From the NCBI RefSeq assembly GCF_000143415.4, contig NW_003314316.1:1279796-1343795 (forward strand): 64,000 nt of DNA, read 5' to 3'. Both the position numbers and the translations under genes were made by a program. How positions within the stretch are numbered: the first letter of the stretch is position 1; the number at the start of each line of letters is the position of its first letter. Positions 1 through 64,000 of this stretch are shown piece after piece. Below the pieces are notes generated by a model. The model searched no databases. It saw only the letters and a list, made by a program, of their open reading frames with translations, and had not been told where the DNA came from. The stretch comes from Selaginella moellendorffii (lineage: Eukaryota; Plantae; Lycopodiophyta).

Positions 1-1428
<1,428 letters not shown>

Positions 1429-5673: not shown

Positions 5674-5681
5674 TGCTGCCT

Positions 5682-5690
5682 AAACCCTAA
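5682..5690. promoter_or_regulatory. Telo-box (AAACCCTAA) just upstream of the VPS18 start
   Basis: Exact AAACCCTAA 9 nt from the predicted ATG. It is retained in the duplicated copy (~12849) and the relic (~51137). Confidence 0.5.
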
Positions 5691-6599
5691 TCTCGCCCAG
5701 GTGTAAGAATTATGAACCTAATGTAAAAAGGTAAAGTAGATTTCGTTTGACCATAAGCATCTTTTACAACTTAGATGTACAAATTGGGTTTTACTAAATC
5801 TGCTCTCGCTTCAAATTTAAGAGTTTGTTTTTAGGATAAGTTTGAAAACTAATTAAATATAAATTGGTGCTAGATTATAAATTTAGATGTGATCATTATG
5901 TTTAAGATAATTCTTATATTCTGTATAATTGGCAAATTTAGACACTTTTCATAAATAGCTAATAAGTTTAAAATTTGACCAAATGGGAAACTACAACAAA
6001 AGTGTCTTGATAAATATAATAAACTATTACATAATAAATAATGAAAGGTTAAGCTCAATATGAAAATGGTTTTTAACACTAATTTAACAATATACCATAT
6101 CAAATATATTTTGTTAGATGACAATTTACAACTTCATTCTTTAGTGCCCTTCTAGATTATGTACCACTGACTAGTCTCTCAACTAGTTTGAATGGAAACT
6201 CTAGCAATACCAATTTCCTACTATCATGTTAGTAAAAAAAATTTATCTAAAAAGATTAATAGATAAATTTTGATACCCACAATACCCATTTGTTTTGTGA
6301 CAATAACATATCTCAAATAACTTTTTATATGGCTCAATTTGATGTTAATTGTGTTAACTCTCTCCACCTTGTGCAAACAATTGTCCTTTAGGAAAATCTT
6401 TTTATTTCCTAGAACAAATCTCCTCCCCCTACCTTATATGAAAGCATGTTCTAGGCTTTCACCCCAGTTGTAAGAGTTTGTCTCATTAAATATAGAATGA
6501 TGTTAGATTATGAATTTAGATGTAAGAATAATACTATTGTGTTCAAGACAATTTTTAAATCTGTAAATATGCCCAATTAACAAATTTAAACACCTTTTA

Positions 6600-7900: not shown

Positions 7901-9163
7901 CATCTTCTTGAGATATTTTATTTGCTAGATTTAAGCATTATTAATTGAGAATAAATAAGAAATCTACTTTTCTTTTGCTAATCAGGAGCAAAACACTACA
8001 CTCGCACATGCAAAAAGTTTGGCATCATGAAAGACTAGAGAATGAATCAGCACTCACCTCTTAGACAGCCAAGAAAAAAGCTTAATCCAATATATCTTTG
8101 GAAAGGATAAAAATTACATGTTTCATTTTTGAAACCAAAGCCAAGATTCTGGAATGCTTGTTGGCTCTGCTAGGTACTATTAGGTTTTTATTGACAAAAT
8201 AAAATAATTTGTTATGCGTTGCATGTAGCAATATCTGGTTTGCTTAATAGTAGTGTTATTTCTACTTATTAATCCAATTGATCAAATAAAACTTTATAAT
8301 TATAAATATGTTTATAATTTTTAAACACAAGATTAACCATTAGAATAAAAAATAATATATTAGAAAGTGTTTATGAAAATTTATTTATTATAAAAATGTT
8401 TATAAATTATAAATACAAAATTAATCTAAATGAATAATAATCATTGGCAAAATATCCTAGAATATCCAAACATATTTATGTATATTCACTACCACCCTAT
8501 ACAGCTTAAGCAAACCAAAAAAAGAAGAGACACAACTAACAGCCATGGTGATAGAGCCTGTTGGAGAAGCAATCCACAGATCCAATAATCTGATTGCTCA
8601 GCTGATCAAACCAGGAGGTAAATACTGTGTATGTATCTGCTGTTTTAAATCTTTGTGACACTCTGCCAAATCTAGAGACATACATATACCTCAGCCTGCG
8701 TGCGTGTGAGGGAGGGGGGGAAATATATATATATATATTTCCTCTAGACCCTTAACTCAGATAAACATTGACTGATTGTTGCTTGGACGACAATTATTAG
8801 TTGGGAAACCGTACAATCCTTATTTCAAGGTATGTATGTGTCTTCAGATACAAAAACGAAGAGCCTTTATATTTTCCAAAGGTCTACCGGATTCAATTCA
8901 TTGCTTGGTCCGACTGCACTCGCGTCCTGTTTCTCCAGGATGACAAGAACGGGATAACTGGAGGTGAGTACTGTCATCAAGGGCCTGAAACATACACGAG
9001 TTTTCTTGTCTGATTAAAGTATAATTCCCAGACAAAAAACATTATGCCTTAGGACTTAGAATTATTCAAAAAGAAAAGTCCACGGTAGACTTTTCCCACG
9101 CTATACCTTTCCAAGATCACGAGCAAAGCAATGGTGCGGTGCTGGTAGTGATCACCAACGGGC

Positions 9164-11377
9164 ATGGCAGCAGCGACTTTGCTCGAGGCGATTCGAATCG
9201 CGGACAAGGTTGGCACAATATCCACTTCGAGCAAGGTCTGTAGAAACCAATGTAGGATCCTCATCGCGGCAGTCGGCTATGTCCGAGACTACCTCAGGCA
9301 AATCCAGGATCTCAACTTCGCGAGCAACGAGCCAGCCTTCGTGTGGGACGAAACCGTGGTTGTCCTTAAGAGAGGCATCCATCTCCTCAAGTCGTGCCAA
9401 GAAGGCAATTGGATTGCCCGGAGCCTGCTGTTCAAGGAAAGCTGCGATGAGTTCCAGAGCATTTATCCCGAGATCTTCAACTGCGTCGAGCTCGTCAGCG
9501 TCTATCTCTTTCAGCTGGCAGCGTCCACCTCGCACAGATCCAGGATTTCCCAGGCTTACAACTCGTGCCTCATGAGGCAGAACTCGAGCAGCATACTGGA
9601 AGAAGCCGGAAGGAACGATCAGAAGGAGCTCATGACTCTCGCAATGAGCCAAGAGCCGGGAAGCCTGACGACCGAGAGCGAACGAGCCAAAGAGATACTC
9701 TGCTCCATGCTCCTGGGAAACAAGTCAGTGATTAACCACAAAGAACTCAAGCTGACAACACACCTGGGACAAGGAGGTTTCGGAACCGTGTACGAAGCAA
9801 TCTGGCTCGGTCACAAGTTTGCAGTGAAAGTCTTCCCTCAAGGTGACAAGAGCTTCGCCAAAGAGCTCGCGGTTCTTCAAGCGGACAAGCATCCCAACGT
9901 GTTGCACATCGCCAGCCAGTCTTTCGATGAAGAGAAGCAGCGGTACTCGCTGGTGATGGAGAAGATGGACATGGACCTGGAAAACTACGTCCTCAAGAAG
10001 AAGAAGTCTCTCCCGTTGCTGTCGATCATGGCAGTGATGCTCCAAGTTGCTACTGGCATGGCGTGGCTTCACTCGAAGAATATAATCCACCGGGACCTCA
10101 AGCCGCAGAACATCTTGGTTGGCGAAGAAGACAACGATCTCGTGAGTATCAGGATTGCCGACTTTGGAGTCTCGAGGCCAAACTTCATCTCCTCCCAGAT
10201 CGAAGCCGTTAGCATCCAAGGCACCAGGAACTTCATGGCACCGGAAGTGTGTAGCGGCGAGCGCTACACGAAAAAGGCCGACGTTTACAGCTACGGGATG
10301 TTGATTTACCAGCTTGTCACTGGAAACGTTCCGTTCGAGGACGGGATGGACATGGAGCAAGTCCTTCAAGGCGAGCGTCCTGAGATACCAGCCACCTGTC
10401 CGGAGTTCCTGTCGCAGCTCATGCGGGAATGCTGGAGCCACGATGCGAAAGAGAGGCCTTCCTTCTCGGATATCTGCGAGCGGCTGAGGCAGCTCAAGAC
10501 CAGGATCATCACTGGCATCGAGTCCATCGACGAGTTACGGGCCAAGTTGGTTGAAGTAGCCGGGTCGTCTTCTTCTTCTTCGTACTCGTCGTCTTCCTCA
10601 TCCTTGTCGCACAGCAGGACTCGAGTGAACCTGGATTCTTTTGTCCAAGCGACTGAAGGGCTTTGGACCAAAAATCCTCCATCTCCCCTTGTACAGGTAA
10701 ACTCTTTTGTTTTTAGTAACTTCCGGTGCTCATTGCGTTTAGTTTCAGCCGGTACCACACCGTCCTCAGCACGTCGCACCAGTAGCAAAACCGGATAACA
10801 GGACCGAGCTCTTCGAAGTGGTGAAGAACGGCCTCGTCAAAAACGCCTTCGAGAAAGCTCTGTCCCTGAACGATCCTTCCACGGTCTGGTGGCTTTGCAC
10901 CAAGGTAATCCATTCACGTCCTCCAGCTGCTCATCAAAGCTTTGTCAGCTCAGGTGGAGCATACCGTCCTGCTCGTCTTCAGTGAATCAATGCTCATGGA
11001 ACTGGCCGAGCAAATCAACACCAACTTCAAGGAAGACACTGCTCGCAGGTTGCTCTGGATCGACGAGATTGGCATCTTGCTGTTCAAGGACGTCAATGGA
11101 CAGGCATGGTCATCACCTCGGATGCTGAGGATCCTGGAGCAGCTTTCACAGAACCTCCACGGCATGATGGCTATAACACCGCCAAAGAGCGAGCTGGGGA
11201 TGAAGCTGGCGAACATGCTGGGCGGCACCAACGTGGGTCTCCAGGTTCGTATGAAGCTCTTCGTGTTATTCGTTTGATTCAAATCGTTTGTCGTCGCAGC
11301 GTATCCGCGTTGCAGTTGACAACAAAGTTCAACACATGGGACTCCTCGGAGGATACTTTCCAGCGGAACACCGGTAG
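9164..11377 (+). CDS. Kinase-fusion gene copy 1 (intact, ~685 aa): MLKL/HeLo-like N-terminal helical domain + TKL/Raf-like Ser/Thr kinase + Ser-rich linker + VARICOSE/EDC4 C-terminal-like domain. Exons 9164-10696, 10749-10904, 10954-11244, 11300-11377
   Basis: Kinase motifs LGQGGFGTVY, FAVK, IIHRDLKPQNILV, IADFG, GTRNFMAPE, KADVYSYG, W..D...RPSF. Three phase-0 GT-AG introns give a continuous frame (511+52+97+25 codons plus stop). Confidence 0.88.
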
Positions 11378-11529
11378 TTTCGGAGTATTTCGATGTTCTA
11401 ATTTCCTGCCTGCCAAAAGCATCAACCATGCTTCACGAAAGAACCATAAAGAACTTGCCAATTCCCGTTCTGAACTTTGAGTGAACGCCTATCATCGTTT
11501 CATCCTGCGACAAATATCCAAGAACAAAG

Positions 11530-12130
11530 CTCTCACCATTCTTGAGTAGACGGTGAAGATCCCAACCTTTTCGATCTAGCAGCAGCAGTAGCAAGCAGCC
11601 TTGGCAGCTTCCGCAGCAGCGTAGACACCAGTAATTCTCGTCGCCACAGCATCGAGGATCATTGCTCTCCGCTCAAAGAACGACTTTGCCACTTTCAGCT
11701 TCTCGGATCCCCATAGGCTTGTAGACGATCCCGGCAGCTAGCCGCTGCTTCATGACCTTGGCTGGACGAACGTAAGCATCGCCCAGCTTGGCCTTCAATC
11801 TCTTCAAGCGCTTTTGGGTACAGCAACCCACCTGAAAATCCGATCGTCCGCATGACCACCACCACCGCCTCCCGCTTTGTTGCGCTTGCCCGGATTCTTG
11901 GAGCCGGTGCTCTCGCCGTGCAAGGACGAGGAATTTGCTGGAGCCACACCAGCAAGCGCCTTGTCTTGCTCTTTGGTCCCTTCCTTCTCGGCGTGCTCGG
12001 ACCAGAGATCACGCGATCCAATCGGGCCATAGGTGCGAACAATGCTGAGTACATCGGCAGATCCTTGGGTCTCTTCTTGGCGTAGAGGAAGGGATTGGAG
12101 ATCGTGGATGTAGAGGCAAGAACACAAAAG
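11530..12130 (-). pseudogene. Antisense partner gene copy A (frameshifted), small basic protein
   Basis: Homologous to ORFs 30826-31305 and 47687-48379 (NPGKRNKAGGG, DRIFRWVAVP, LVWL). Frame changes relative to those copies. Confidence 0.6.
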
Positions 12131-12289: not shown

Positions 12290-12374
12290 CATGGCAGCAG
12301 CGACTTTGCTCGAGGCGATTCGAATCGCGGACAAGGTTGGCACAAGATCCACGAACACAAACTCGAGCAAGGTC
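12290..12374 (+). pseudogene. Truncated 5' fragment of the kinase-fusion gene (first ~28 codons)
   Basis: ATGGCAGCAGCGACTTTGCTCGAGG...CTCGAGCAAGGTC, matching the 48764 copy, then an abrupt switch to VPS18 sequence. Confidence 0.85.
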
Positions 12375-12841
12375 ACCACTGCTGCTCCGGAGATTTGCTA
12401 GACAGTGCCTTCCACTGGGATCCAGGAAAACCTTACAAACGTATTGATCGGCTCCGCGGCTCAACGCCAACTCTATCGGATCACGGGAGAAAAGCTCACA
12501 GTTTTCAGAAGAAACAAAGAAAGCGAGCGTGAATTTTTCTTTATTCTTTTGGAGACTCACCTGAGTTATCCCCGCCTCCAAATTCGTGATGAACAATCCA
12601 GCTGCTGCTAGTACTGACGAGCAGGACATTGTTTCCAGCGGCTACTGAGGTGACAAGCCCGTGACCTTTGGCGGCGTTTTGCTCCAGCACATCCAAGCTG
12701 AAGATCTTGCTCTCTGGCCTCGACAGTGAAATCGCCTGGAAATCCTGCGAGGAATTGGATCAGCGATCGACGATTCAGCTCAATCTCACCTCGTTGAGCC
12801 CCGATTGAGCGGGCGAAGACGACGTCCATTCATCCAGCATT
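12374..12841 (-). pseudogene. Duplicated 5' fragment of VPS18 (first exons only)
   Basis: Near-identical to 5207-5673, e.g. ACCACTGCTGCTCCGGAGATTTGC...CATTGCTGCCTAAACCCTAA. Confidence 0.9.
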
Positions 12842-14408
12842 GCTGCCTAAACCCTAATCTCGCCCAGGTGTAAGAATTATGAACCTAATGTAAAAAGGTA
12901 AAGTAGATTTCGTTTGACCATATATATGGTAGTACTAAATTTGCTGTCACTTATTTTCTAGGATAAGTTTGAAAATTAATTAACTATAAAATGGTGCTAG
13001 ATTATAAATTTAGATGTGATCATATGTTTAAAATAATTTCTATTAACAAATCTAAACACTTTCCTTAAATAGCTAATAAGCCTAAAATTGACCAAATGTA
13101 TCTTGGCAAATATAATAAATTATCACATAATGAATACTGAAAGGCTAAGCTTAATATCAAAGGGGTTCCTAATACTAGTAAATGTAATTTAATTATATAA
13201 ATTTCATATTAAATATGCTTTATTAAATGATAATTTAAGATATCATTCTTTTGTGCCCTTCTAAATTATTGTATACTGACTAGTCTCTTAACTAGTTTGG
13301 GTGGAAACTCTAGCAATATTAACTTCCTACTATCATGGTAATAAAAGAAAAATATCTAGAAAGATTGATAGATAGATTTTGATACCTACAATAACATTTG
13401 CAATAATGATACACCTCAAATAACTTTTTACATAGATTAAGTTCATGTTAATCATGTTAACTCCTTCCACTTTGTGCAAACATTTGTCCTTTAAGAAAAT
13501 CTTTTTATTTCCTAGAATTAATCTCCTCCTCTTACCTTATATGAAAACACATTTTGGGCTTTCACCCAGTCTTAGGAGTTTCTCTCTAGGACAATCACAA
13601 AAATCTATTAAATATAAAATGATGTTAGAATGTGAATTTGGATATGGGAACAACACTATTATGTTTAAGTTAATTTTTAAATCTGTAAATATGCCCACTT
13701 AACAAATCTAATCTCTGTTCATAAATATCCAATAGGACCAAATGAGACCAACACATAAAGAATGATATCAAGAGTATCTTGATAAACACAGTAAACTATC
13801 ACTTAGCAAATATGGAGGGACCAAGCTTGACATTATAAAAGTTCCCAATATTAGCAAGTGTAAGCCATCACACTCTAGGAGGCAACAAAAGCTCACTAAC
13901 AAGACTTAAGTTTGCCTTGGAATTTTTTATACAAAGCCAATAGCAATTTAGCCAACTTACCTCATGTCAAGGAGAACACCATATAAAGTTTGGTATGGCA
14001 TTAAACTGGATGTGAGTCTTTGCAAGTGGTGTTCAGGAACCACAAGGTTCAAAGATGATCATTAGTTGTCATCTTTAATGAGTCTAGGACATATACAACA
14101 CAAGATCTTTAACCATTGAAACAGTTTTCCTTGACTGAAGTCATAAGGGACAATTAGGGCACATATAATAGTGTAGCTGGAGGTGAGGATGGTGACAATG
14201 AAGGGAATTTAGTAGGATAACAAGGATGATGCATCAAGTGGGGATGGTGTTGGAGACAGCAACAATAGTGGATCCAGTTGGAGTGCCAATATGGCAAATC
14301 TATTGGTTGGGACCTTGAGCTACTAACAAGGAGGAAAGTCATAAGAATGAAGTTCCCCTTGGAAAGCATCAAGGATATGATCTAGAGGCAGAAAAGGTAG
14401 TGCTAAAT

Positions 14409-17400
14409 TGTTAGGCGCCAACTTTGACCACGTGGTCAACGTTGGTCAAAGGGAGGCTTAAGGATATATTAAAGCATGTTAGGGTGAGGAACCTCAAGAG
14501 GTGGCGTAACATAGTCTAGGGTGATTAGATTTTTGTCTTTTTGTGCTGGATCATAACATTGGTATCAGAGAAGTTGGTTGCAATGGTCGACCAAGCTGAA
14601 TGCTAGAATCCTATTGTCGATGGTGGTGCCGACGAAGCTGCAGAGATTTGGACCATTCAAGATGTGGTTCACGAGCTGTGAGCCCTTAATTGAAATCAGC
14701 AAGAGATGCAAGATGAGATGCATGGCATGATGGATACCATGCGTGGGCGTGTTGAGGCACTCGAGGTTGGACGGGGTAGCACTCCAAGTAAGCCTTCTTT
14801 GGTAGATCGACTCAAGATTCCAACCTTTTCTGGTGATGGTGGTGTGGACGAGTGTCTGGCTTGGCTAGCCAATGTGAATAAGTTCTTGGCTGCTAGGGGA
14901 ACTCCAGATGTAGAGGCTTTAGTGGCTATTCCAATGGTTTTGCGTGATGTGGGTCTTCGATGGTGGAATTGGCTTGAGGAGTCTCGTGTTGCAGATAAGA
15001 AACCACCAGTGTCTACTATGGATGAGTTTGAGGTTGCTTTCCATTTACGTTTTGCCTCTCATTACAACATGGAGAATGCTCGTACAGAACTTTAACATTT
15101 CCAGCAAGGGAAAATGACACTTGGGGACTATATTGAGAAGCTTACTTGCTTGATTAGTCATATTCCAACGAAGGATCCAGATCAAAACAAGTCTTACTTC
15201 ATTGATGGCCTATATAGTGAGAACATGTGGCAACACTTGCATCATTTTCAGCCTACAAAGAGTTTGGAGGAGCTCTTTGATGGGGCTCGTCGACTTGACA
15301 ATTACAAGCACAAGTCTTGCAAGCGTTCGTGGAGTCCTTCTATCGAGAATCATCGTGATGATCGCCATGGACACGAGGATAGGAACAAGTATCACAAGTT
15401 GAAGTCAGTGGTGACTACTTCGGATGCAAAGGGGTCCAAGAAGCAGAAGTTCTTTGTGAAGAATTATAGACAGGGTTGTCATCATTGCGGCGAACTTGGA
15501 CACTACAAGGCTGATTGTCCACAGTTGAAGAACAAGCAATAGGACAAGAAGAATGCCCAATCTTCTTCTCACCATAAGTTAGATACTAAAAAGTTACAAA
15601 CTTTGCAGCGTGAGGATGACGAGAATGACCATTCCGGTTAGAGGAAGAGACTTTCGATTGTTGCTCATCAGCTCAACTGTGTGTGGAACAAGATGGAGCT
15701 CGAGGATATGCGTGAATCAGCTTTAATGCTGGAGGGCGTGTTCCATGGCGATCCAGTGTGAATTTTACTGGATAGTGGGAGCGATGACAACTTTGTTTCG
15801 GCAAAGTTTGTTGCGGAGCATGGCCTGGTCACATGTGGAGTTCTTCCATACGCAGTGGAAGGTGCAGCTACCTCTGCTCAACATTTTGATGTTTGTGTCG
15901 AGGGGTTGGAAGTGTTGGTTGGCAAAATCACACTTGTGGAGACTTTTTATTTCGCGGATATCCATCGTGTGGATCTCATTCTTGGGATGCCATGGTTGGT
16001 GAAGGTGGATCCAGAGATAAAGTGGAGCATTAAGTGTATCTTGCTGAAGTATGGTGGCGTTAAAGATGTGTGGTTTGGCGAGGGCGTTCAACCATCAGTT
16101 GTTATACTCTCTACTACATCTTTGAAGCAGGTTTGTCATAATGAAAAGCACTTTCGAGTTACTTATTGTTTGTTCGTGACTTGGGGGCCTAAGGCACATG
16201 TGGGGAAGAAGCAGCAATATGGGACGTACTTGATGAGTTTTTTGATGTTTTTCCATTTGAACTTCCCCATGGGTTGCCTCCGTTACAAGGTGTGGAGCAT
16301 GGGATTACATTGGAGCCGGGGACGTGGCCAATTTACCGGCGTTCATTTCGGTTAAGTTATGCAGAGGAGCAAGAAGTTCAACAACAACTCAAGGAATTAC
16401 TTGGGTTTGGATTTATTCAGCCAAGTAAGTCCCCGTTTGGTGCTCCGGTCTTGTTTGTGAAGAAGAAGGACAATTCAATGCTAATGTGTATTAACTACCA
16501 CGCTTTGAACAAGAAGACAATAAAGGATAAGATGCCAATGCCACGTGTGGATGATATCCTAGACAAGCTTGGTGAAGCACGAGTGTTTACCAAGATTAAT
16601 CTGAGGAGTGGATATTATCAGATTGCAATGGATGATGCATCTATCTCCAAGACGGCATTCAACACAAACTTCGGACATTTTGAGTTTACAGTTATGCTGT
16701 TTGGTTTAATGAATGCACTGGCCACATTTACTCGATTGATGACGGAGGTATTTGGGCGTTATCTTCATGAGTTTGTGGAGATTTTCTTGGACAATACTCT
16801 TGTTTTAGCAAGAATATGGAGGAGCATAAGGTGCATTTGAGCAAGGTTCTTTTGTTACTCCGAGACAGCAAACTTTATACGAAGAAGAGCAAATATGAAT
16901 TTGCAAAGTTGAAGGTGGAATATCTAGGCCATATTGTGACATCTAAGGGTGTCAAGACGGATCCAAGGAAGGTGGCTGTGGTGGAAAACTGGCCTACACC
17001 GACTACAGTGGCCGAGTTATGCAGTTTTCTTGGTATGGCTAGTTACTACCGACGTTTCCAGCATAAGTTTGCCAAGGTGGCTATTCCTTTAACGCGGTTG
17101 TTACGCAAGAATGTGCCATTCGAGTGGAAGCAGCCACAAGACGAGAGTTTTGTGTCGCTGAAACGATTGTTGAGCGAGACTCCAGTGCTTTGGATTGCTG
17201 ATCCATCGAAACCTTACGAGGTGACATGCGATGTGAGTGGTTATGCACTGGGAGGAGTTCTCATGCAAGAAGGACAGCCTATTGCATATGAGAGTCGAAC
17301 TTTGAATTTCGCGGAGCAATGTTATTCCACATATAAGCAAGAGTTACTCTCTATTGTTCATGCTTTGCGGACGTGGCGGCACTATCTTTATGGTGCAGTG

Positions 17401-28464: not shown

Positions 28465-30634
28465 ATGGCAGCAGCGACTTTGCTCAAGGCGATTCGAATT
28501 GCGGACAAGGTTGGCACAATATCCACTTCCAGCAAGGTCTGTAGAAACCAACGTAGGATCCTCATTGCGGCGGTCGGCTATGTCCGAGACTACCTCAAGC
28601 AAATCCAGGATCTCAACTTCGCGAGCAACGGGCCAGCCTTCGTGTGGGACGAAACCGTGGCTGTCCTTAACAGAGGCCTCCATCTCCTCAAGTCGTGCCA
28701 AGAAGGCAATTGGATCGCGCGGAGCCTGCTGTTCAAGGAAAGCTGCGATGAGTTCCAGAGCATTTATCCCGAGATCTACAACTGTGTCGAGCTCGTCAGC
28801 GTCTATCTCCTTCAGCTGGCACCGTCCACCTCGCACAGATCCAGGATTACCGAGGCTTACAACTCGTGCCTCATGAGGCAGAACTCGAGCAGCATGCTGG
28901 AAGAAGCCGAAAGGAACGATCGGAAGGAGCTCATGACTCTCGCAATGAGCCACGAGCCCGGGAAGCCTGACGACCGAGAGCGAAACAGCCAAAGAGATAC
29001 TTTGCTCCATGCTCCTGGGAAACAAGTCAGTGATTAACCACAAGGAACTCAAGCTGACAACACACCTGGGACAAGGAGGTTTCGGAACCGTGTATGAAGC
29101 AATCTGGCTCGGTCACAAGTTTGCAGTGAAAGTCTTCCCTCAAGGTGACAAGAGCTTCGCCAAAGAGCTCGCGGTTCTCGAAGCGGACAAGCATCCCAAC
29201 GTGTTGCACATCGCCGGCCAGTCTTTAGATGAAGAGAAGCAGCGGTACTCGCTGGTGATGGAGAAGATGGACATGGACCTGGCAAACTACGTCCTCAAGA
29301 AGAAGAAATCTCTCCCGTTGCTGTCGATCGTGGCAGTGATGCTCCAAGTTGCTACTGGCATGACGTGGCTTCACTCGAAGAATATAATCCACCGGGACCT
29401 CAAGCCGCAGAACATCTTGGTTGGCGAAGAAGACAACGATCTCGTGAGTATCAGGATTGCCGACTTTGGAGTCTCGAGGCCCGATTTCATCTCCTCCCTC
29501 ATCAGCAAAGCCACCGCCAAGCAAGGCACCAGAAACTTCATGGCACCAGAAGTGTGGACCAGCGAGCGCTACACGAAGAAGGCCGACGTTTACAGCTACG
29601 GGATGCTGAGCTACCAGCTTGTCACTGGAAACATTCCGTTCAAGGTCGGGATGGACATGGAGCAAGTCCTTCGAGGCGAGCGTCCTGAGATACCAGCCAC
29701 CTGTCCAGAGTTCCTGTCGCAGCTCATGCGGGAATGCTGGAGCCACGATGCAAAAGAGAGGCCTTCCTTCTCGGATATCTGCGAGCGGCTGAAGCAGCTC
29801 AAGACCAGGATCATCACTGGCACTGACTCCATCGATGAGTTACGAGCCAAGTTGGTTGCAGCAGCCAGGTCATCTTCCTCTTCTTCGTACTCGTCGTCTT
29901 CCTCATCCTCGTCGCACATCATGAACCTGGATTCTCCTGTCCAAGCACCTGAAGGGCTTTGGACCCAAAATCCTCCATCTCCCGTTGTCCAGGTAAACTC
30001 TTTTGCTTTATGTAACTTCTGGAGCTCACCACCTTTGGTTTCAGCCGGTACCACACCGTCCTCACCAAGTCGCACCACCAGATCAAAGGACCGAGCCCTT
30101 CGAACTGGTAAAGTACAGCCTCTTCATAAACGCCTTCGAGAAAGCTCTGTCCCTGAACGATCCTTCCACGGTCTGGTGGCTTTGCACCAAGGTAATCCAT
30201 TCACGTCCTCCAGCTGCTCATCAAAGCTTTGTCAGCTCAGGTGGAGCAAAGCGTCGTGCTCCTCTTCAGTGACTCAATGCTCATGGAAGTGGCCGAGCAA
30301 ATCAACACCAACTTCAAGGAAGACACTGCTCGCAGGTTGCTCTGGTTCGCCGAGATCCTGTTCATCTTGCTGTACGTCAACGTCAATGGACAGACATCAC
30401 CTCGGATGCAGAGGATCTTGGAGGAGCTTTCACAGAACCTCCACGGCATGATGGCTATAACACCGTCAAAGAGCGAGCTGGGGATGGAGCTGGCGAACGT
30501 GCTGAAAAGAACCAACGTGGGTCTTCGGGTTCGTATGAAGCTCTTCGTGTTATTCGTTTGATTCAAATCGTTTGTCGTCGCAGCGTATCCGATATGGGAA
30601 CAAACTTCAGAAGAAAGGGAAAAGAAAACTGTGA
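28465..30634 (+). pseudogene. Kinase-fusion gene copy 2 with a +1 frameshift (~28957) between the N-terminal domain and the kinase
   Basis: GAGCCCGGG here versus GAGCCGGG in the other copies. ORFs 28465-29037 and 29009 onward. Same intron positions. Last exon RIRYGNKLQKKGKRKL*. Confidence 0.85.
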
Positions 30635-30825
30635 AATAAAAAAGCTGCGGAACACCGGTAGTTTCTGAGTATTGAGATGTTCTAATTTTCTGCCTGCCAA
30701 AAGTATCAACCATGCTTCACGAAAGAACCATAAAGAACTTACCAATTCCCATTCGTAACTTCGTCTCATCCTGCCGGGATAAACGTGAAGGAAACTTACG
30801 AGATAAATATCAAAGCACAAAGGTC

Positions 30826-36303: not shown

Positions 36304-36555
36304 ACTCGGACTTGGTCTCGGACTCGATCTCGGACCCGACTTAGGACTCGATCTCGGACTAGATCTCGGACTTGACCTCGAACCCGATTTCAGACTCGAC
36401 CTCGGACTCGACCTCGGTCTCAGACCTGATCTCGGATATCGAACTTTGTCTCGAACTCGGTCTCAAACTTGGTCTCAGAGTCGGCCTTGGACTCGATCCC
36501 GGACTCTATCTCGAACTCGGTCTTAGAGTCGGTTTTAGACTCGATCTCAGACTTG
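36304..36555. repeat. Degenerate 12-bp tandem repeat (GACTCGATCTCG-like) inside the chromovirus LTR
   Basis: Visible periodicity, giving RTRS/LDLG low-complexity translations. Confidence 0.85.
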
Positions 36556-42500: not shown

Positions 42501-42664
42501 GGTCCCAATCTCAACCTCAAGTCAGTTTGGAAGTACCACTGGAAAGTTCCTTCAAGACTGGTTCCTGGACCTCACTATCCCTACTATACTTTTGGAACCC
42601 CCTGTATCCCCCCTCCCCCCTGGGAGACACATGCTTTGGGCTTTCACCCCTCGACCTGTATTAA

Positions 42665-44411: not shown

Positions 44412-44661
44412 AGAAAAACAAAATGCCTTAGGACCTAGAATTATTCAAAAAGAAAAGTCCAGACAAAAAAAAATGCCTTAGACTTAGAATTATTCAAAAA
44501 GAAAAGTCCAGACAAAAAAAAATGCCTTAGGACTTAGAATTATTCAAAAAGAAAAGTCCAGACAAAAAAAAATGCCTTAGGACTTAGAATTATTCAAAAA
44601 GAAAAGTCCAGACAAAAAGAAAACTGCCTTAGGACTTGGAATTAATCAAAAAGAAAAGTCC
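44412..44661. repeat. ~50-bp tandem repeat x5 derived from the kinase proximal upstream sequence
   Basis: Unit AGACAAAAAAAAATGCCTTAGGACTTAGAATTATTCAAAAAGAAAAGTCC. It is single-copy upstream of the other paralogs. Confidence 0.95.
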
Positions 44662-44667
44662 ACTGTA

Positions 44668-45114
44668 GGAAGAAGTCGGAAGGAACGATTGGAAGGAGCT
44701 CATGACTCTCGCAATGAGCCAAGAGCCGGGAAGCCTGACGACTGAGACAGAACGAGCCAAAGAGATACTCTGCTCCATGCTCCTGGGAAACAAGTCAGTG
44801 ATTAACCACAAGGAACTCAAGCTGACAACACACCTGGGACAAGGAGCTTACGGAACCGTGTACGAAGCAATGTGGCTCGGTCACAAGTTCGCGGTGAAAG
44901 TCTTCCCTCAAGGTGACACCAGCTTTGCCAAAGAGCTCGCGGTTCTCGGAGCTCACAAGCATCCCAACGTGTTGCACATTGCCGGCCATTCTTTCGATGG
45001 AGAGAAGCAGCAGTACTCGCTGGTGATGGAGAAGATGGACATGGACCTAGCAAACTACCTCCTCAAGAAGAACTCCCTCTCGTTGCTGTCGATCGTGGCA
45101 GTGATGCTCCAAGT
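44668..45114 (+). pseudogene. Internal kinase fragment (linker plus N-lobe only)
   Basis: MTLAMSQEPG...GQGAYG...SIVAVMLQV, followed by upstream-region sequence again. Confidence 0.85.
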
Positions 45115-45317
45115 CGGAATCAAATTTGTGACCATCTTCTCCCGCTACTGTCATCAAGGGCCTAAAACATACACCAATTTTCTTGTCTGATTAAAGTATG
45201 ATTCCCAGAAAAAAAATAAAATGCCTTAGGACATTAGAATTATTCAAAAAGAAAAGTCCACGGTAGACTTTTCCCACGCTATACCTTTACAAGAATGGTG
45301 CGGCGCTGGTAACGGAC

Positions 45318-47487
45318 ATGGCAGCAGCGACTTTGCTCGAGGCGATTCGAATCGCGGACAAGGTTGGCACAATATCCACTTCCAGCAAGGTCTGTAGAAA
45401 CCAACATAGGATCCTCATCGCGGCAGTTGGCTATGTCCGAGACTACCTCAAGCAAATCCAGGATCTCAACTTCGCGAGCAACGGGCCAGCCTTCGTGTGG
45501 GACGAAACCGTGGCTGTCCTTAACAGAGGCCTCCATCTCCTCAAGTCGTGCCAAGAAGGCAATTGGATCACGCGGAGCCTGCTGTTCAAGGAAAGCTGCG
45601 ATGAGTTCCAGAGCATTTATCCCGAGATCCACAACTGCGTCGAGCTCGTCAGCGTCTATCTCTTTCAGCTGGCACCGTCCACCTCGCACAGATCCAGGAT
45701 TGCCGAGGCTTACAACTCGTGCCTCATGTGGCAGAACTCGAGCAGCATGCTGGAAGAAGCCGGAAGGAACGATCGGAAGGAGCTCATGGCTCTCGCAATG
45801 AGCCAAGAGCCGGGAAGCCTGACGACCGAGACAGAACGAGCCAAAGAGATACTCTGCTCCGTGCTCCTGGGAAACAAGTCAGTGATTAACCACAAGGAAC
45901 TCAAGCTGACAACACACCTGGGACAAGGAGCTTACGGAACCGTGTACGAAGCAATCTGGCTCGGTCACAAGTTTGCAGTGAAAGTCTTCCCTCAAGGTGA
46001 CACCAGCTTCGCCAAAGAGCTCGCGGTTCTTGAAGCGGACAAGCATCCCAACGTGTTGCACATCGCCAGCCATTCTTTCGATGCAGAGAAGCAGCGGTAC
46101 TCGCTGGTGATGGAGAAGATGGACATGGACCTGGCAAACTACCTCCTCAAGAAGAAGAAGTCTCTCCCGTTGCTGTCGATCGTGGCAGTGATGCTCCAAG
46201 TTGCTACTGGCATGGCGTGGCTTCACTCGAAGAATATAATCCACCGGGACCTCAAGCCGCAGAACATCTTGGTTGGCGAAGAAGACAACGATCTCGTGAG
46301 TATCAGGATTGCCGACTTTGGAGTCTCGAGGCCCGATTTCATCTCCTCCCTCATCAGCGAAGCCACCGCCAAGCAAGGCACCAGAAACTTCATGGCACCG
46401 GAAGTGTGGAGCGGCGAGCGCTACACGAAAAAGGCCGACGTTTACAGCTACGGGATGATGATTTACCAGCTTGTCACTGGAAACGTTCCGTTCGAGGACG
46501 GGATGGACATGGAGCAAGTCCTTCGAGGCGAGCGTCCTGAGGTACCAGCAACCTGTCCAGAGTTCCTGTCGCAGCTCATGCGGGAATGCTGGAGCCACGA
46601 TGCAAAAGAGAGGCCTTCCTTCTCGGATATCTGTGAGCGGCTGAAGCAGCTCAAGACCAGGATCATCACTGGCACCGACTCCATCGACGAGTTACGAGCC
46701 AAGTTGGTTGAAGCAGCCAGGTCATCTTCCTCTTCTTCGTACTCGTCGTCTTCCTCGTCCTCGTCGCACAGCATGAACCTGGATTCTCCTGTCCAAGCAC
46801 CTGAGGGGCTTTGGACCCAAAATCCTCCATCTCCCGTTGTCCAGGTAAACTCTTTTGCTTTTAGTAACTCCACCTTTAGTTTCAGCCGGCACCACACCGT
46901 CCTCAGCACGTCGCACCAGCAGCAAAGCCGGATAACAGGGCCGAGCTCTTCGAACTGGTGAAGAACGGCCTCGTCAAAAACGCCTTTGAGAAAGCTCTGT
47001 CCCTGAACGATCCTTCCACGTTCTGGTGGCTTTGCACCAAGGTAATCCATTCACGTCCTCCAGCTGCTCATCAAAGCTTTGTCAGCTCAGGTGGAGGAAA
47101 GCGTCCTGCTCACCTTCAGTGAATCAATGCTCATGGAAGTGGCCGAGCAAATCAACACCAACTTCAAGGAAGACACTGCTCGCAGGTTGCTCTGGATGGA
47201 CGAGATCCTGGCCATCTTGATGTTGGTCGACACATCACCTCGGATGCGGAGGATATTGGAGAAGCTTTCACAGAACCTCCACGGCATGATGGCTATAACA
47301 CCTTCAAAGAACGAGCTGGGGATGAAGCTGGCGAGAGTGCTGGAAGATACCAACTTGGGTCTTCATGTACGTATGAAACTCTTCGTGTTATTCGTTTGAT
47401 TCAAATCGTTTGTCGTCGCAGGATATCCGAGTTGAGAACAGCAAAGCTGAGAAGAAAGGGAAAAGAAAACAGGGACCTATGATGTGA
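45318..47487 (+). CDS. Kinase-fusion gene copy 3 (apparently intact)
   Basis: Uninterrupted exon 1 and conserved splice sites. Last exon DIRVENSKAEKKGKRKQGPMM*. Confidence 0.85.
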
Positions 47488-47686
47488 AATAAAACAGCTA
47501 TATATTTCCAGCGGAACACCGGTAGTTTCTGAGTATTGAGATCTAATTTTCTGCCTGCCAAAAGTATCAACCATGCTTCACGAAAGAACCATAAAGAACT
47601 TACCAATTCCCATTCGTAACTTCGTCTCATCCTGCCGGGATAAACGTGAAGGAAACTTACGAGATAAATATCAAAGCACAAAGGTC

Positions 47687-48763: not shown

Positions 48764-50989
48764 ATGGCAGCAGCGACTTTGCTCGAGGCGATTCGAATCG
48801 CGGACAAGGTTGGCACAAGATCCACGAACACAAACTCGAGCAAGGTCTGTAGAAACCCATGTAGGATCCTCATCGCGGCGGTCGGCTATGTCCGAGACTA
48901 CCTCAAGCAAATCCAAGATCTCAACTTCACGAGCAACGGGCCAGCCTTCGTGTGGGACGAAACCGTGGCTGTCCTTCACAGAGGCCTCCATCTCCTCAAG
49001 TCATGCCAAGATGGCGATTGGATCGCCCGGAGCCTGCTGTTCGAGGAAAGCTGCGATGAGTTCCAGAGCATTTACCACGAGATCTACAACTGCGTCGAGC
49101 TCGTCAGCGTCTATCTCTTTCAGCTGGCACCGTCCACCTCGCACAGATCCAGGATTGCCGAGGCTTACAACTCGTGCCTCATGAGGCAGAACTCGAGCAG
49201 CATGCTGGAAGAAGCCGGAAGGAACGATCGGAAGGAGCTCATGGCTCTCGCAATGAACCAAGAGCCGGGAAGCCTGACGACCGAGACAGAACGAGCCAAA
49301 GAGATACTCTGCTCCATGCTCCTGGGAAACAAGTCAGTGATCAACCACAAGGAATTGAAGCTGAGAACACACCTGGGACAAGGAGCTTACGGAACCGTGT
49401 ACGAAGCAATCTGGCTCGGTCACAAGTTCGCGGTGAAAGTCTTCGCTCAAGGTGACACCAGCTTCGCCAAAGAGCTCGCGGTTCTCGGAGCTCACAAGCA
49501 TCCCAACGTGTTGCACATTGCTGGCCATTCTTTCGATGGAGAGAAGCAGCGGTACTCGCTGGTGATGGAGAAGATGGACATGGACCTGGCAAACTACCTC
49601 CTCAAGAAGAACTCCCTCTCGTTGCTGTCGATCGTGGCAGTGATGGCTACTGGCATGGCTTGGCTTCACTCGAAGAACGTAATCCACCGGGACCTCAAGC
49701 CGCAGAACATCTTGGTTGGCGAAGAAGACAACGATCTCGTGAGTATCAGGATTGCCGACTTTGGAGTCTCGAGGCCCGATTTCATCTCCTCCCTCATCAG
49801 CGAAGCCACCCCCAAGCAAGGCACCAGAAACTTCATGGCACCAGAAGTGTGGACCAGCGAGCGCTACACGAAGAAGGCCGACGTTTACAGCTACGGGATG
49901 CTGAGCTACCAGCTTGTCACTGGAAACATTCCGTTCAAGGTCGGGATGGACATGGAGCAAGTCCTTCGAGGCGAGCGTCCTGAGATACCAGCCACCTGTC
50001 CAGAGTTCCTGTCGCAGCTCATGCGGGAATGCTGGAACCACGATGCAAAAGAGAGGCCTTCCTTCTCCGATATCTGCAAGCGGCTGAAGCAGCTCAAGTC
50101 CAGGATCATCACTGGCACCGACTCCATCGACGAGTTACGAGCCAAGTTGGTTGAAGCAGCCAGGTCATCTTCCTCTTCTTCGTACTCGTCGTCTTCCTCG
50201 TCCTCGTCGCACAGCAGGACTCGAGTGAACCTGGATTCTCTTGTCCAAGCGACTGAGAAGCTTTGGACCCAAAATCGCCCGCCTTCTCGTGTCCAGGTAA
50301 ACTCTTTTGCTTTTAGTAACTTCCGGACCCTCACCACCTTTGGTTTCAGCCGGTACCACACCGTCCTCACCAAGTCGCACCATTACCAAAACCAGATAAA
50401 AGGACCGAGCTCTTCGAACTGGTAAAGAACGGCCTCATCATAAACGCCTTCGAGAAAGCTCTGTCCCTGAACGATCCTTCCACAGTCTGGTGGCTTTGCA
50501 CCAAGGTAATCTGTTTACGCTCTCTGGCCGCTGATCACGCCCGTCCTTTGTCAACTCAGGTAGAGCATACCGTGCTGCTTGTCTTCAGTGAATCGATGCT
50601 CATGGCACTGGCCGAGAAAATCAACACCAACTTCACGGAAGACACTGCTCGCAGGCTGGTCTGGATCGACGAGATTGGCGACTTGCTGTTAAAAGACCGC
50701 AATGGATGGGCATCACCTCGGAAGATGAGGATCCTGGAGCAGCTTTCACAGAACCTCCACGGTATGATGGCCATAACACCACCAAAGAGTGAGCTGCGCA
50801 TGACCTTGACGAACATGCTGGAAGGCACCAACATGTGGCTGCAGGTTCGTACATATGAAGCTCTTCGTTTCTTTCGTTTCCATCTCCTTGATTCACATCG
50901 TTTTGTTGCAGCGTGTCCGGGTTGCAGTGGAAAACAAAGTTCGATACATGAGCATCGTTGGCGGATATTTTCCAGCGGAACACCGGTAG
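48764..50989 (+). CDS. Kinase-fusion gene copy 4 (open frame; 3-aa in-frame deletion of LQV in the kinase alphaE region)
   Basis: SIVAVM-ATGMAWLH versus SIVAVMLQVATG. Conserved introns. Last exon RVRVAVENKVRYMSIVGGYFPAEHR*. Confidence 0.8.
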
Positions 50990-57075: not shown

Positions 57076-59170
57076 ATGGCAGCAAAAAGTTTGGCCGAGG
57101 CAATTCGAATCTCAGACAAAGTTGCCGCAAGGTCCACGAACACAAACTCGAGCAAGGTCTGTAGGAACCAATGTAGGATCTTCTTAGCAGCGGTCGACCA
57201 TGTCGGAGACTACCTCAAGCGAATCCAGGATCTCAACTTCACGAGCACTGGGACAGCTTTCGTGTGGGACGAAACCGTGGCTGTCCTTAAGAGAGGCCTC
57301 CATCTCCTCAAGTCGTGCCAAGAAGGCAATTGGATCGCGCGGAGCCTGCTGTTCAAGGAAAGCTGCGATGAGTTCCAGAGCATTTATACCGTCCACCTCG
57401 GTAAGATCCAAGATTGCCAAAGCTTACAACTCGTGCCTCATGAGGCAAAACTCGAACAGCATGCTGGAAGAAGCCGGAAGGAATGACAGGAAGGCGCTCA
57501 TGGCTCTCGCAATGAGCCAAGAGCCGGGAAGCCTGACGACCGAGAGCGAGCAAGCCAAAGAGATACTTTGCTCCATGCTCCTGGGAAACAAGTCAGTGAT
57601 TAACCACAAGGAACTCAAGCTGACAACACACCTGGGACAAGGCGGTTTCGGAACCGTGTACGAAGCAATCTGGCTCGGTCACAAGTTTGCAGTGAAAGTC
57701 TTCCCTCAAGGTGACAAGAGCTTCGCCAAAGAGCTCGCGGTTCTCGAAGCGGACAAGCATCCCAACGTGTTGCACATCGCCGGTCATTCTTTCGATGAAG
57801 AGAAGCAGCGGTACTCGCTGGTGATGGAGAAGATGGACATGGACCTGGCAAACTACGTCCTCAAGAAGAACTCTCTCCCGTTGCTGTCGATCGTGGCAGT
57901 GATGCTCCAAGTTGCTACTGGCATGGCGTGGCTTCACTCGAAGAATATAATCCACCGGGACCTCAAGCCGCAGAACATCTTGGTTGGCGAAGAAGACAAC
58001 GATCTCGTGAGTATCAGGATTGCCGACTTTGGAGTCTCGAGGCCAAACTTCATCTCCTCCCAGATCGAAGCCGTTAGCATCCAAGGCACCAGGAACTTCA
58101 TGGCACCGGAGGCGTGGAGCAGCGAGCGCTACACGAAAAAGGCCGACGTTTACAGCTACGGGATGCTGATTTACCAGCTTGTCACTGGAAACGTTCCGTT
58201 CGAGGACGGGATGGACATGGAGCAAGTCCTTCGAGGCAAGCGTCCTGAGATACCAGCCACCTGTCCAGAGTTCCTGTCGCAGCTCATGCGGGAATGCTGG
58301 AGCCACGATGCGAAAGAGAGGCCTTCCTTCTCGGATATCTGCGAGCGGCTGAAGCAGCTCAAGACCAGGATCATCACTGGCATCGAGTCCATCGACGAGT
58401 TACGGGTCAAGTTGGTTGAAGTAGCCGGGTCGTCTTCCTCTTCTTCGTACTCGTCGTCTTCCTCATCCTCGTCGCACAGCAGGACTCGAGTGAACCTGGA
58501 TTCTCTTGTCCAAGCGACTGAAGGGCTTTGGACCAAAAATCCTCCATCTCCCCTTGTACAGGTAAACTCTTTTGTTTTTAGTAACTTCCGGTGCTCATCG
58601 TGTTTAGTTTCAGCCGGTACCACACCGTCCTCAGCACTTCGCACCAGTAGCAAAACCGGATAACAGGACCGAGCTCTTCGAACTGGTGAAGAACGGCCTC
58701 GTCAGAAACGCCTTCGAGAAAGCTCTGTCCCTGAACGATCCTTCCATGGTCTGGTGGCTTTGCACCAAGGTAATCCATTCACGTCCTCCAGCTGCTCATC
58801 AAAGCTTTGTCAGCTCAGGTGGAGCATACCGTCCTGCTTGTCTTCAGTGAATCAATGCTCATGGAACTGGCCGAGCAAATCAACACCAACTTCAAGGAAG
58901 ACACTGCTCGCAGGTTGCTCTGGATCGACGAGATTGGCATCTTGCTGTTCAAAGACGTCAATGGACAGGCATGGTCATCACCTCGGGTGCTGAGGATCTT
59001 GGAGCAGCTTTCACAGAACTTCCACGGCATGATGGCTATAACACCGCCAAAGAGCGAGCTGGGGATGAAGCTGGCGAACATGCTGGGCGGCACCAACGTG
59101 GGTCTCCAGGTTCGTATGAAGCTCTTCATGTTATTCATTTGATTCAAATCGTTTGTCGTTGCAGCATATC
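57076..59170 (+). pseudogene. Kinase-fusion gene copy 5: ~50-nt deletion/frameshift at ~57388, and last exon interrupted by Gypsy A3 (it resumes at 63960)
   Basis: CATTTAT|ACCGTCCACC junction. Kinase and C-terminal exons are nearly identical to copy 1. Sequence after 63960 (GTTGCAGTGACAGACAAAGTTCAACACATG) matches the copy-1 last exon. Confidence 0.85.
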
Positions 59171-62100
59171 TGTTAGGCACCAGCTTTGACTACGTGGTCA
59201 ACATCGGTCAAAGGGTATATGAAGGCATGTTAGGGTAAGGGATTTAACCTACCCTAGGGCTCACAGTGGAGTGGCGGTGCAGTGGAGCTTTTGAGGTAGC
59301 TCAGGGGTGGTTGGGTGGTGAGGAACCTCAAGAGGTGGCGTAGCATAATCTAGGGCAACTAGATTTTTGTCTTTTTGCGCCGGATCATAACATTAGTATT
59401 AGAGAAGTTGGTTGCGATGGCCGACCAAGTTGAACGCTGGAATCCTATTGTCGATGGTGGTGCCAACAATGGTGCTGACGAAGCTGCGGAGATTTGGACC
59501 ATTCAAGATGTGGTTCATGAGCTGCGAGCCCTTAACCGAAATCAGTAAGAGATGCAAGACGAGATGCATGGCATGATGGATACCATGCGTGGGCGTGTTG
59601 AGGCACTCGAGGCTGGACGGGGTAGCGCTCCAAGTAAGCCTTCTTTGGTAGATCGACTCAAAATTCCAAATTTTTCCGGTGATGGTGGTGTGGATGAGTG
59701 TCTCACTTGGCTAGCCAATGTGAAGAAGTTCTTGGCTGCTAGAGGAACTCCAGATGCAGAGGCTTTAGTGGCTATTCCGATGGTTTTGCGTGATGCGGGT
59801 TTTCGATGGTGGAATTGGCTTGAGGAGTCCCGTGTTGTGGATAAGAAACCACCAGTGTCTACCATGGATGAGTTTGAGGCTGCTTTTCATTTATGTTTTG
59901 CCCCTCATTACGACATGGAGAATGCTCGTACAGAACTTTGACATTTCCAGCAAGGGAAAATGATGCTCGGGGACTATATTGAGAAGCTTACTCGCTTGAT
60001 TAGTCATGTTCCAATGAAGGATCCAGATCAGAACAAGTCCTACTTCATTGATGGCCTACATAGTGAGAGCATGCGGCAACACTTGCGTCATTCTCAGCCT
60101 ACAAAGAGTTTGAAGGAGCTCTTTGATGTGGCTCGTCGACTTGACAATGATAAGCACAAGTCTCGCAAGCGTTCGCGGAGTCCTTCTGTCGAGAATCGTC
60201 GTGATGATCACCATGGACACAAGGATGGGAACAAGCATCACAAATTGAAGTCAGTGGTGACTACTTCGGATGCAAAGGGGTCCAAGAAGCAGAAGTTCTT
60301 TGTGAAGAATTATAGACAAGGTTGTCATCATTGCAGCGAATTTGGACACTACAAGGCTGATTGTCCGCAGTTGAAGAACAAGCAGCAGGACAAAAAGAAT
60401 GGCCAATCTTCTTCTCACGGTAAGTTCGATACTAAAAAGTTGTAAACTTTGCAGCGTGAGGATGAGGAGAACGACCATTCCGGTTGGAGGAAGCGACTTT
60501 CGATCGTTGCTCATCAGCTCAACTGTGTGTGGAACAAGATGGAGCTCGAGGATATGCGTGAATCAACTTTAATGTTGGAGGGTGTGTTCCGTGGCGATCC
60601 AATGCGGATTTTACTAGATAGTGGGAGCGATAACAACTTTGTTTCTGCTGCGGAGCATGGCCTGGTCACACGTGGAGTTCTTCCATACACAGTGGAAGGT
60701 GCAGCCACCTTTACTCAACATTTCGATGCTTGTGTCGAGGGGCTGGAAGTGTTGGTTGGCAAAACCACACTTGTGGAGACTTTTTATCTCACGGATATCC
60801 ATCGTGTGGATCTCATTCTTGGGATGCCATGGTTGGCAAAGGTGGATCCAGAGATAAAGTGGAGCATTAAGCGTATCTCGCTGGAGTATGGTGGCGTTAA
60901 AGATGTGTGGTTTGGCGAGGGCGTTCAACCACCAGTTGTTATGCTCTCTGCTACATCTTTGAAACGGGCTTGTCATAATAAAAAAGCACTTTCAAGTTAC
61001 TTGCTGTTTGTTCGTGACTTGGGGGACCAAGGCACGTGTGGGGGAGAAGCAGCAGTACAGGATATATTTGACGAGTTTTCTGATGTTTTTCCATATGAAC
61101 TTCCTCATGGATTACCTCCGTTACGAGGTGTGGAGCATGGGATTACATTGGAGTCGGGGATGCGGCCAATTTACCAGTGTCCATTTTGGTTAAGTTATGC
61201 GCAGGAGCAAGAAGTTCAACGACAAGTCAAGGAGTTACTTGAGTTTGGATTTATTCAGCCAAGTAAGTCTCCGTTTGGTGCTCCAGTCTTGCTTGTGAAG
61301 AAGAAAGACGGTTCAATGCGGTGAAGGACAAGATTTACCGTGCTTTAAACAAGAAGACAGTGAAGGACAAGATGCCGATGCCACGTGTGGATGATATCCT
61401 GGACAAGCTTGGTGAAGCACGAGTGTTTACTAAGATTGATCTGAGGAGTGGATATCATCAGATTGCAATGGATGATGCATCTATCTCCAAGACGGCATTC
61501 AACACAAGTTTCGGACATTTTGAGTTTACCGTTATGCCGTTTGGTTTGACGAATGCACTGGCCACATTTACTCAGTTGATGACGGAGGTATTTGGGCGTT
61601 ATCTTCATGAGTTTGTGAAGATTTTCTTGGACGATATTCTTGTTTTTAGCAAGAATATGGAGGAGCATAGGGTGCATTTGCGCAAGGTTCTTTTGTTACT
61701 TTGAGATAGCAAACTTTATGCGAAGAAGAGCAAATGTGAATTTGCAAAGTCGGAGGTGGAATATCTAGGCCATATTGTGACATCTAAGGGTGTCAAGACA
61801 GATCCAAGGAAGGTGGCTATGGTGGAAAACTGGCCTACACTGACTACAGTGGCCGAGTTGTGCAGTTTTCTTGGTATGGCTAGTTACTACCGACGTTTCC
61901 AGCATAAGTTTGCAGAGGTGGCTATTCCTTTGACGTGGTTGTTACGCAAGAATGTGCCATTCGAGTGGAAGAAGCCACAAGAGGAGAGTTTTGTAGCGCT
62001 GAAATGATTGTTGAGCGAGGCTCTAGTGCTTCGCATTGCTGATCCATTGAAACCTTACGAGGTGACATGCGATGTGAGTGGTTATGCACTGGGAGGAGTT

Positions 62101-63959: not shown

Positions 63960-64000
63960 GTATCTGAGTTGCAGTGACAGACAAAGTTCAACACATGAGA

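Follow-up and report, generated by a model that had tools for sequence, protein, structure and literature searches.

Gene structure of copy A

The 64,000-nucleotide stretch of the lycophyte Selaginella moellendorffii genome analysed here (contig NW_003314316.1, positions 1,279,796 to 1,343,795; hereafter the window) contains a tandem array of genes whose product very probably unites three parts, an N-terminal MLKL-type four-helix bundle, a protein kinase and a C-terminal EDC4_C domain, the last of them acquired by capture of exons from a gene for VARICOSE (VCS), the plant counterpart of animal EDC4/Ge-1. The first full-length member, copy A, is intact and lies at positions 9164-11377 of the plus strand. 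Its four-exon model, built from the sequence (9164-10696, 10749-10904, 10954-11244 and 11300-11377), yields a single open reading frame (ORF) of 685 residues that stops at 11377, and its three introns (10697-10748, 52 nt; 10905-10953, 49 nt; 11245-11299, 55 nt) have GT..AG borders and are in phase 0 throughout. The spliced translation is identical to the RefSeq protein P0001. Copy A is an existing annotated RefSeq model with a precomputed EDC4_C match in the protein database; the novelty is in its interpretation, the sequence itself being already known.

The exons follow the domains closely. Based on its ORF, Pfam matches, catalytic motifs, and AlphaFold2 models compared with Foldseek, exon 1 would encode an MLKL_N-like four-helix bundle with brace (residues 1 to ~190), the kinase (residues 195-441) and a Ser-rich linker (residues 467-481), ending at residue 511. 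At intron 1, the kinase gene meets the VCS-derived exons. Exon 2 encodes the first half of EDC4_C, up to PDNRTELFEVVKNGLVKNAFEKALSLNDPSTVWWLCTK, and exon 3 the second half, as indicated by Pfam, the splice model and alignment; between them, intron 2 separates LCTK from VEH. Exon 4 adds a tail of 25 residues and the stop codon. A first-pass annotation of the window had quoted peptides read across these exons, including the LCTK/VEH junction, and all were recovered at their positions and match the splice product of the model. It had also held that exons 2 and 3 must be spliced together for the domain to be seen. Indeed, Pfam scans of single exons gave EDC4_C at E 0.041 for exon 2 and no match for exon 3; EDC4_C is therefore detectable only once the exons are spliced. 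Used as a stand-alone query for transcript-derived fragments or orthologues 135-430 residues long, residues 440-685 gave no matches.

The C-terminal domain is related to VARICOSE

In P0001, Pfam places EDC4_C (PF21289) at residues 535-643 (profile positions 4-114 of 121, E 1.8e-6), where its 28.1 bits exceed the gathering score of 27; in six paralogues, the range is 26.2-33.9 bits. Profile A1, built from the C-termini of seven paralogues and searched against a library of 1.84 billion representative proteins, retrieved the family itself plus 56 proteins at E up to 0.001. Its matches in long proteins sit at the extreme C-terminus. All ten of the scanned matches outside the family carry EDC4_C, at 64-99 bits, and three of these ten (P0121, P0123, P0136) have WD40-type domains, two of which pass the Ge1_WD40 cut-off. 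The best relative in the whole library is Selaginella's own VCS (E 4e-15), matched over residues 1141-1275 of 1279; by BLASTP, the two share 35% identity over 136 residues (E 3e-22).

The fold agrees with this assignment. The AlphaFold2 model of the C-terminal 181 residues is all-helical (pLDDT 74.9), and its top Protein Data Bank (PDB) match in Foldseek is 2VXG, the C-terminal region of Drosophila Ge-1 (probability 1.0, TM 0.71), other high-ranking matches being the Ge1 domain of S. pombe Pdc1, SPIRAL2 and katanin p80. In an alignment that took in the VCS proteins of Selaginella, Riccia, Chara, Diphasiastrum and others, the motifs AFxKAL, WLC, DTxxxLxW and LxxNLH, invariant across the VCS family, are kept in the fusion C-termini; relative to native VCS, they have lost a 5-residue loop and their last helix differs. 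Taken together, the Pfam score above cut-off, the match to 2VXG and the kinship with the native VCS bear out the proposal that this part is a VARICOSE/EDC4-Ge-1 domain. An origin from SPIRAL2 or katanin p80 was ruled out despite the same fold, since both Pfam and the library-wide profile search match EDC4/VCS only.

Pfam detected neither the N-terminal Ge1_WD40 propeller nor the proximal helical region in P0001, both of which are present in the native P0121. P0001 is therefore not a VCS orthologue, and carries one VCS-derived domain. The first-pass annotation had also credited this domain with decapping-complex interactions, which is an overstatement: the proximal helical region of human EDC4, and not the distal part represented by 2VXG, is where oligomerisation and the binding of DCP2 and XRN1 have been mapped (PMC4005699), and this proximal region has no counterpart in the fusion. 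As only the distal part was captured, these interactions cannot be assumed for the fusion. The distal C-terminal region of Ge-1 has been linked to localisation in processing bodies (P-bodies), according to Jinek et al. 2008 as cited in PMC10756542.

Intron positions point to capture of two VCS exons

The first-pass annotation had proposed comparing the LCTK/V intron with native VCS genes. At the native Selaginella VCS locus, the last intron lies between Q1177 and V1178 (LCNQ/VDP), in phase 0, and intron 2 of the fusion (LCTK/VEH) occupies the same alignment column in the same phase, so that position and phase are shared. The preceding native intron (K1129/V1130) lies two codons away from the intron 1 acceptor of the fusion, and an alternative acceptor 21 nt downstream would account for the 7-residue gap in the shorter paralogues. 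Exon 4 is without native counterpart, the last native exon continuing to its own stop. With the internal intron shared and the upstream junction matching within two codons, these data argue that the last two coding exons of VCS were captured at the DNA level. The captured exons, together with their intron, were very probably attached to a kinase gene whose end was already the Ser-rich stretch, the join lying in an intron.

Divergence of EDC4_C after capture was fast, as judged from the 35% identity to native VCS and a stem of ~2.2 changes per site. The EDC4_C domain tree, in which the fusion clade stands on this stem, did not place the donor. In the first tree, the fusion clade was drawn toward another long branch; in a second tree, with the long rows P0141 and P0157 omitted, it falls close to the group of land-plant VCS proteins. 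A clade of the fusions with Selaginella VCS was not rejected (AU p 0.14), nor was it demonstrated.

The kinase retains the catalytic motifs

Pfam assigns Pkinase to residues 198-439 of P0001 (E 2e-52), with the motifs GQGGFG at 202, FAVKV at 219, HRDLKPQN at 309, DFG at 333 and APE at 359. The VAIK lysine, HRD, DFG and APE are present in every intact copy, and the G-loop pattern is matched by all except P0003, for which an exact-sequence look-up found no gene on record. From this full set of motifs, the kinase is apparently active. Its closest sequences are Raf-like/STY kinases and DUF1221-kinases, the latter at 35% identity. The angiosperm DUF1221-kinases included in the motif comparison have HGD and GFG and are without G-loop and VAIK, which fits the report of plant MLKLs as pseudokinases (10.1101/681015).

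The N-terminal region resembles the MLKL bundle

Evidence for the N-terminal domain comes from homology and from structural modelling. The protein P0018 comes from a public sequencing-run assembly, and Pfam detects MLKL_N in it at residues 22-108 (29 bits against a cut-off of 27); the alignment of P0001 with P0018 starts at residue 24 and runs unbroken through the kinase. When the N-terminal parts alone are compared, residues 24-111 of P0001 match P0018 in its MLKL_N region (E 3e-7). For residues 1-195, the best PDB matches of the AlphaFold2 model (pLDDT 81) are AtMLKL3 (6KA4, probability 0.98) and the executioner domain of human MLKL (6ZVO, 6D74), at probabilities of 0.97-0.98. Sequence searches against PDB chains returned nothing significant for the N-terminal part, nor for the C-terminal one; in both cases, the structural link comes from AlphaFold2 and Foldseek only.

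The N-terminus had been likened to MLKL and DUF1221 proteins alike. The first half of that claim has moderate support, through P0018 and the matches to AtMLKL3 and human MLKL, and the second was not supported: hhalign of the Selaginella N-termini against DUF1221 N-termini gave a non-significant E of 0.61, the alignments being shallow and the sensitivity low, and no DUF1221 (PF06760) match was found by Pfam in the family proteins. An MLKL-type four-helix bundle with brace at the N-terminus is thus moderately supported, as a prediction from sequence and model. P0018 and P0017 (a JGI record) combine MLKL_N with a kinase that has HGD, yet DFG; outside Selaginella, no closer relatives spanning the N-terminal domain were found (28% identity).

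A tandem array of intact and broken copies

Copy A is one of five full-length copies in the window, all on the plus strand and with all splice sites kept, recovered by tblastn and DNA alignment together with two fragments; the tandem array that had been suggested is real. Three copies are intact (A, C and D) and two are frameshifted (B and E). Copy B (28465..30661, plus strand) is full length, with a frameshift in exon 1 (~28960) and its splice sites kept, and is a likely pseudogene by tblastn and DNA alignment. Copy C (45318..47525, plus strand) is intact, and DNA alignment and comparison match it to 667/667 residues of the RefSeq isoform P0004, with a 7-residue length difference. Copy D (48764..50989, plus strand), likewise intact, has a translation identical to RefSeq P0009 (683 aa). 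In copy E (57076..59225, plus strand; DNA alignment), the frame of exon 1 is broken at ~57390, a break that the other haplotype shares, making this copy another likely pseudogene. The fragments are a piece with kinase residues 139-296 (44648..45118, plus strand; tblastn) and an orphan duplicate of a 5' end, which comprises the first 28 codons and ~75 bp upstream (12291..12374, plus strand; ORF, DNA alignment). The birth-and-death pattern inferred earlier is visible here, with intact copies, frameshifted copies and fragments side by side. The protein encoded by the orphan 5' end is 100% identical to copy D, and the sequence downstream of it (12374-13500) is a repeat 84% identical to window positions 5207-6397.

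The repeat unit spans ~8969-12086. An allelic scaffold, L002 (GL377616.1:775208-803552), is 99.3% identical to window positions 55140-63875 and, beyond the end of the window, carries two further intact copies followed by unrelated genes (Ribosomal_L31e, expansin). Adjacent copies are fused in RefSeq models on this scaffold, P0005 extending over 16 kb and P0002 (804 aa) containing two stretches of kinase. Pieces of a minus-strand gene accompany the repeat units of copies A, B and C (window positions 11817-12086, 31166-31363 and 48027-48275); the gene is intact only at the cluster end on the allelic scaffold (L002:18891-19658, minus strand), as a 255-aa ORF with no Pfam match. These pieces record the unequal crossing-over by which the array was built.

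Selection and distribution

Ratios of nonsynonymous to synonymous change (dN/dS, Nei-Gojobori), summed over the ten pairs of the five intact copies, which are not independent, were lowest in the kinase (0.40), close to this in EDC4_C (0.45) and in bundle and brace (0.46), and highest in the linker (0.70). The value for EDC4_C is like that for the kinase, which argues that the captured domain is translated and constrained like the remaining protein; it is now under purifying selection as strong as that on the kinase, and the family as a whole evolves fairly fast. In addition, the lengths of exons 2 and 3 stay multiples of three, even in broken copies.

Outside S. moellendorffii, no instance of the fusion architecture turned up, whether the query was the whole exon-1 protein, the N-terminal region or the C-terminal profile, and a word-based search with residues 1-190 returned S. 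moellendorffii paralogues only. The first-pass annotation had suspected that the fusion was undescribed, and the literature searched on MLKL, Selaginella, VARICOSE/EDC4_C, decapping and integrated domains indeed held no account of a protein joining bundle, kinase and EDC4_C, nor any integrated EDC4_C domain. The combination is a real and apparently undescribed one.

Comparison with known systems

To our knowledge, all cloned kinase fusion resistance genes come from Triticeae, and wheat and its relatives are so far the only source of cloned non-NLR resistance proteins based on kinases and, recently, on MLKL bundles. In the Selaginella family, Pfam, the profile search and intron mapping likewise identify a kinase fused to a domain derived from an unrelated host protein. 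Among the cereal proteins, wheat Pm13 is a resistance protein made of MLKL_NTD and an active kinase, classed as a kinase fusion protein (PMC10951266), and the wheat MLKL R3AK uses its bundle to execute cell death (10.64898/2026.08.07.743466). Like these two, the Selaginella proteins would have an N-terminal MLKL-type four-helix bundle, a brace and a kinase with all catalytic residues. By contrast, they carry a third domain after the kinase, where the cereal proteins have none; their kinase is nearest to Raf-like/STY kinases and DUF1221-kinases, whereas that of Pm13 belongs to the RLK/Pelle LRR_8B group; and, unlike the cereal MLKL_NTD-kinases, they fall below the Pfam MLKL_N cut-off and come from a lycophyte, not a grass.

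Seed-plant MLKLs consist of HeLo domain, brace, pseudokinase and Ser-rich tail (10.1101/681015). The fusion resembles the DUF1221-bearing AtMLKL1-3 in its predicted HeLo-like bundle and brace, in its kinase fold and in the Ser-rich stretch that follows the kinase, with a kinase domain 35% identical and with AtMLKL3 as the top structural match of the N-terminal model. It differs from the AtMLKLs and animal MLKL, which are pseudokinases, in having all catalytic motifs, and from the AtMLKL type in its C-terminus, the tail there being without known domain; that family, moreover, has been described across seed plants only. With the distal domain of VARICOSE/EDC4/Ge-1 (EDC4_C; 2VXG, 4Q2S), the C-terminus shares homology, fold, invariant motifs and an intron position, but the fusion is without WD40 and proximal region, its domain is only 35% identical and has lost the 5-residue loop, the last helix is altered, and a tail exon has been added. 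Finally, as in kinase fusion proteins and integrated-domain NLRs, a signalling chassis is joined to a piece of an unrelated, pathogen-targeted host protein in a clustered birth-and-death locus; unlike those systems, the chassis carries its own putative executioner domain.

Possible functions of the fusion

We tentatively propose that the family most likely represents a kinase-fusion-type intracellular sensor and executor, analogous to the cereal MLKL_NTD-kinase resistance proteins, in which EDC4_C mimics the distal domain of VCS. This mimicry would tie the protein to binders of the distal VCS domain, either P-body components or pathogen proteins that target VCS. Engagement of EDC4_C would change the activity of the kinase, and the altered kinase would release the four-helix bundle, leading to its oligomerisation and to signalling or killing. 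By analogy with integrated-domain receptors, a guard or decoy function is plausible: the fungal effectors PST02549 (PMC4749346) and TRADE (10.1101/2025.01.09.632073) both associate with EDC4/VCS, and about 2 NLRs have been reported in S. moellendorffii (PMC3782705), which makes the expanded fusion family a candidate means of detecting intracellular attack. A more specific version of this proposal is an MLKL-based integrated-decoy receptor that guards VCS in a lycophyte with almost no NLRs, with the EDC4_C bait as sensor, the active kinase as switch and the bundle as executioner in one chain. We consider this full version unlikely; if true, no earlier integrated-domain immune receptor would be known from outside seed plants, and no earlier MLKL with a bait domain.

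Several observations weigh against the sensor-executor proposal. A bait should resemble its model, yet EDC4_C is 35% identical to VCS, is without the 5-residue loop and has a changed last helix. Some RefSeq paralogue models stop inside a retained intron 1 or are without EDC4_C (P0005, P0007), and the domain therefore need not be in every transcript. For the bundle, there is no Pfam MLKL_N match on P0001 itself, DUF7792 scores 15-20 bits on the N-terminus, below its cut-off of 27, and the Foldseek matches of the N-terminal model have an E of only 0.17. No NLR partner gene lies within the window. There is no sign of positive selection, the domain-wide dN/dS being only moderately raised, and the family is known from a single species, so it is young or narrowly distributed.

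A somewhat unlikely alternative is a regulatory kinase targeted to P-bodies, in which EDC4_C would bring the active kinase to P-bodies or the decapping complex to phosphorylate decapping factors and tune mRNA decay under stress, as SnRK2 does with VCS. The P-body link of the distal Ge-1 region (Jinek et al. 2008, cited in PMC10756542) speaks for it, as do the use of a C-terminal VCS fragment as a plant P-body marker (PMC4749346) and the regulation of VCS by kinases (10.1101/2025.01.09.632073). The complete catalytic motifs and an EDC4_C under purifying selection, with family-wide invariant motifs kept, are also in its favour. However, it leaves the MLKL-type bundle, the tandem amplification with pseudogenes and the restriction to a single species unexplained, and a housekeeping regulator would be expected to be single-copy, present across lycophytes and slower than a dN/dS of 0.4-0.46. 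Should it nevertheless hold, the family would be a natural experiment in which the distal Ge-1 domain alone serves as a portable module.

The very fast divergence after capture (stem ~2.2 changes per site; 35% identity) is what would be expected of an MLKL-like executor whose EDC4_C fold was re-purposed as an autoinhibitory, oligomerisation or cytoskeleton-binding module, the link to decapping being gone. The same fold serves microtubule functions in SPIRAL2 and katanin p80 (PMC10756542), AtMLKLs associate with microtubules (10.1101/681015), and seed-plant MLKLs likewise have a C-terminal extension past the (pseudo)kinase. We nevertheless regard re-purposing as improbable, the sequence being clearly derived from VCS and not from SPR2 or p80, with the invariant VCS motifs retained.

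That the array is a young and decaying chimeric family, born by accident when segments were duplicated in a transposon-rich region and largely or wholly without function, is very improbable: two of the five window copies are frameshifted, fragments, an orphan 5' end and abundant retrotransposons surround them, and one species only is known to have the family, but five copies keep intact four-exon ORFs with all splice sites, dN/dS is 0.40-0.46 in three domains against 0.70 in the linker, and the lengths of exons 2 and 3 remain multiples of three even in broken copies.

Whether as a sensor-executor or otherwise, the fusion combines a putative executioner with an apparently active kinase and with part of a protein known as an effector target, a part whose origin can be followed exon by exon. 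Researchers in plant immunity and cell death should find it of clear interest, and it offers a simple, testable link from regulated cell death to P-bodies.

Transposable elements and a neighbouring gene

Elements of the Ty3/gypsy, copia and PIF/Harbinger types lie between the copies. A DDE_Tnp_4 (PIF/Harbinger-type) transposase ORF and copia-type gag and RVT_2 ORFs are found there (27109-28179, minus strand; 31636-32727, plus strand; 34766-35230, plus strand). Strong GC skew (+0.2 or -0.2) marks positions 14000-24000, 36000-44000 and 60000-64000 of the window. The plus-strand skewed stretches coincide with Ty3/gypsy pol ORFs (RT, RNase H, integrase, Tf2-1 SH3), and the opposite skew in the 36-44 kb stretch suggests an element on the other strand. 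Near the start of the window, an ORF at 790-1428 (plus strand) carries an fn3_6 domain (E 3.6e-28). Domains of this kind occur at the C-termini of subtilisin-like proteases, and the ORF would be a neighbouring gene unrelated to the kinase fusion.

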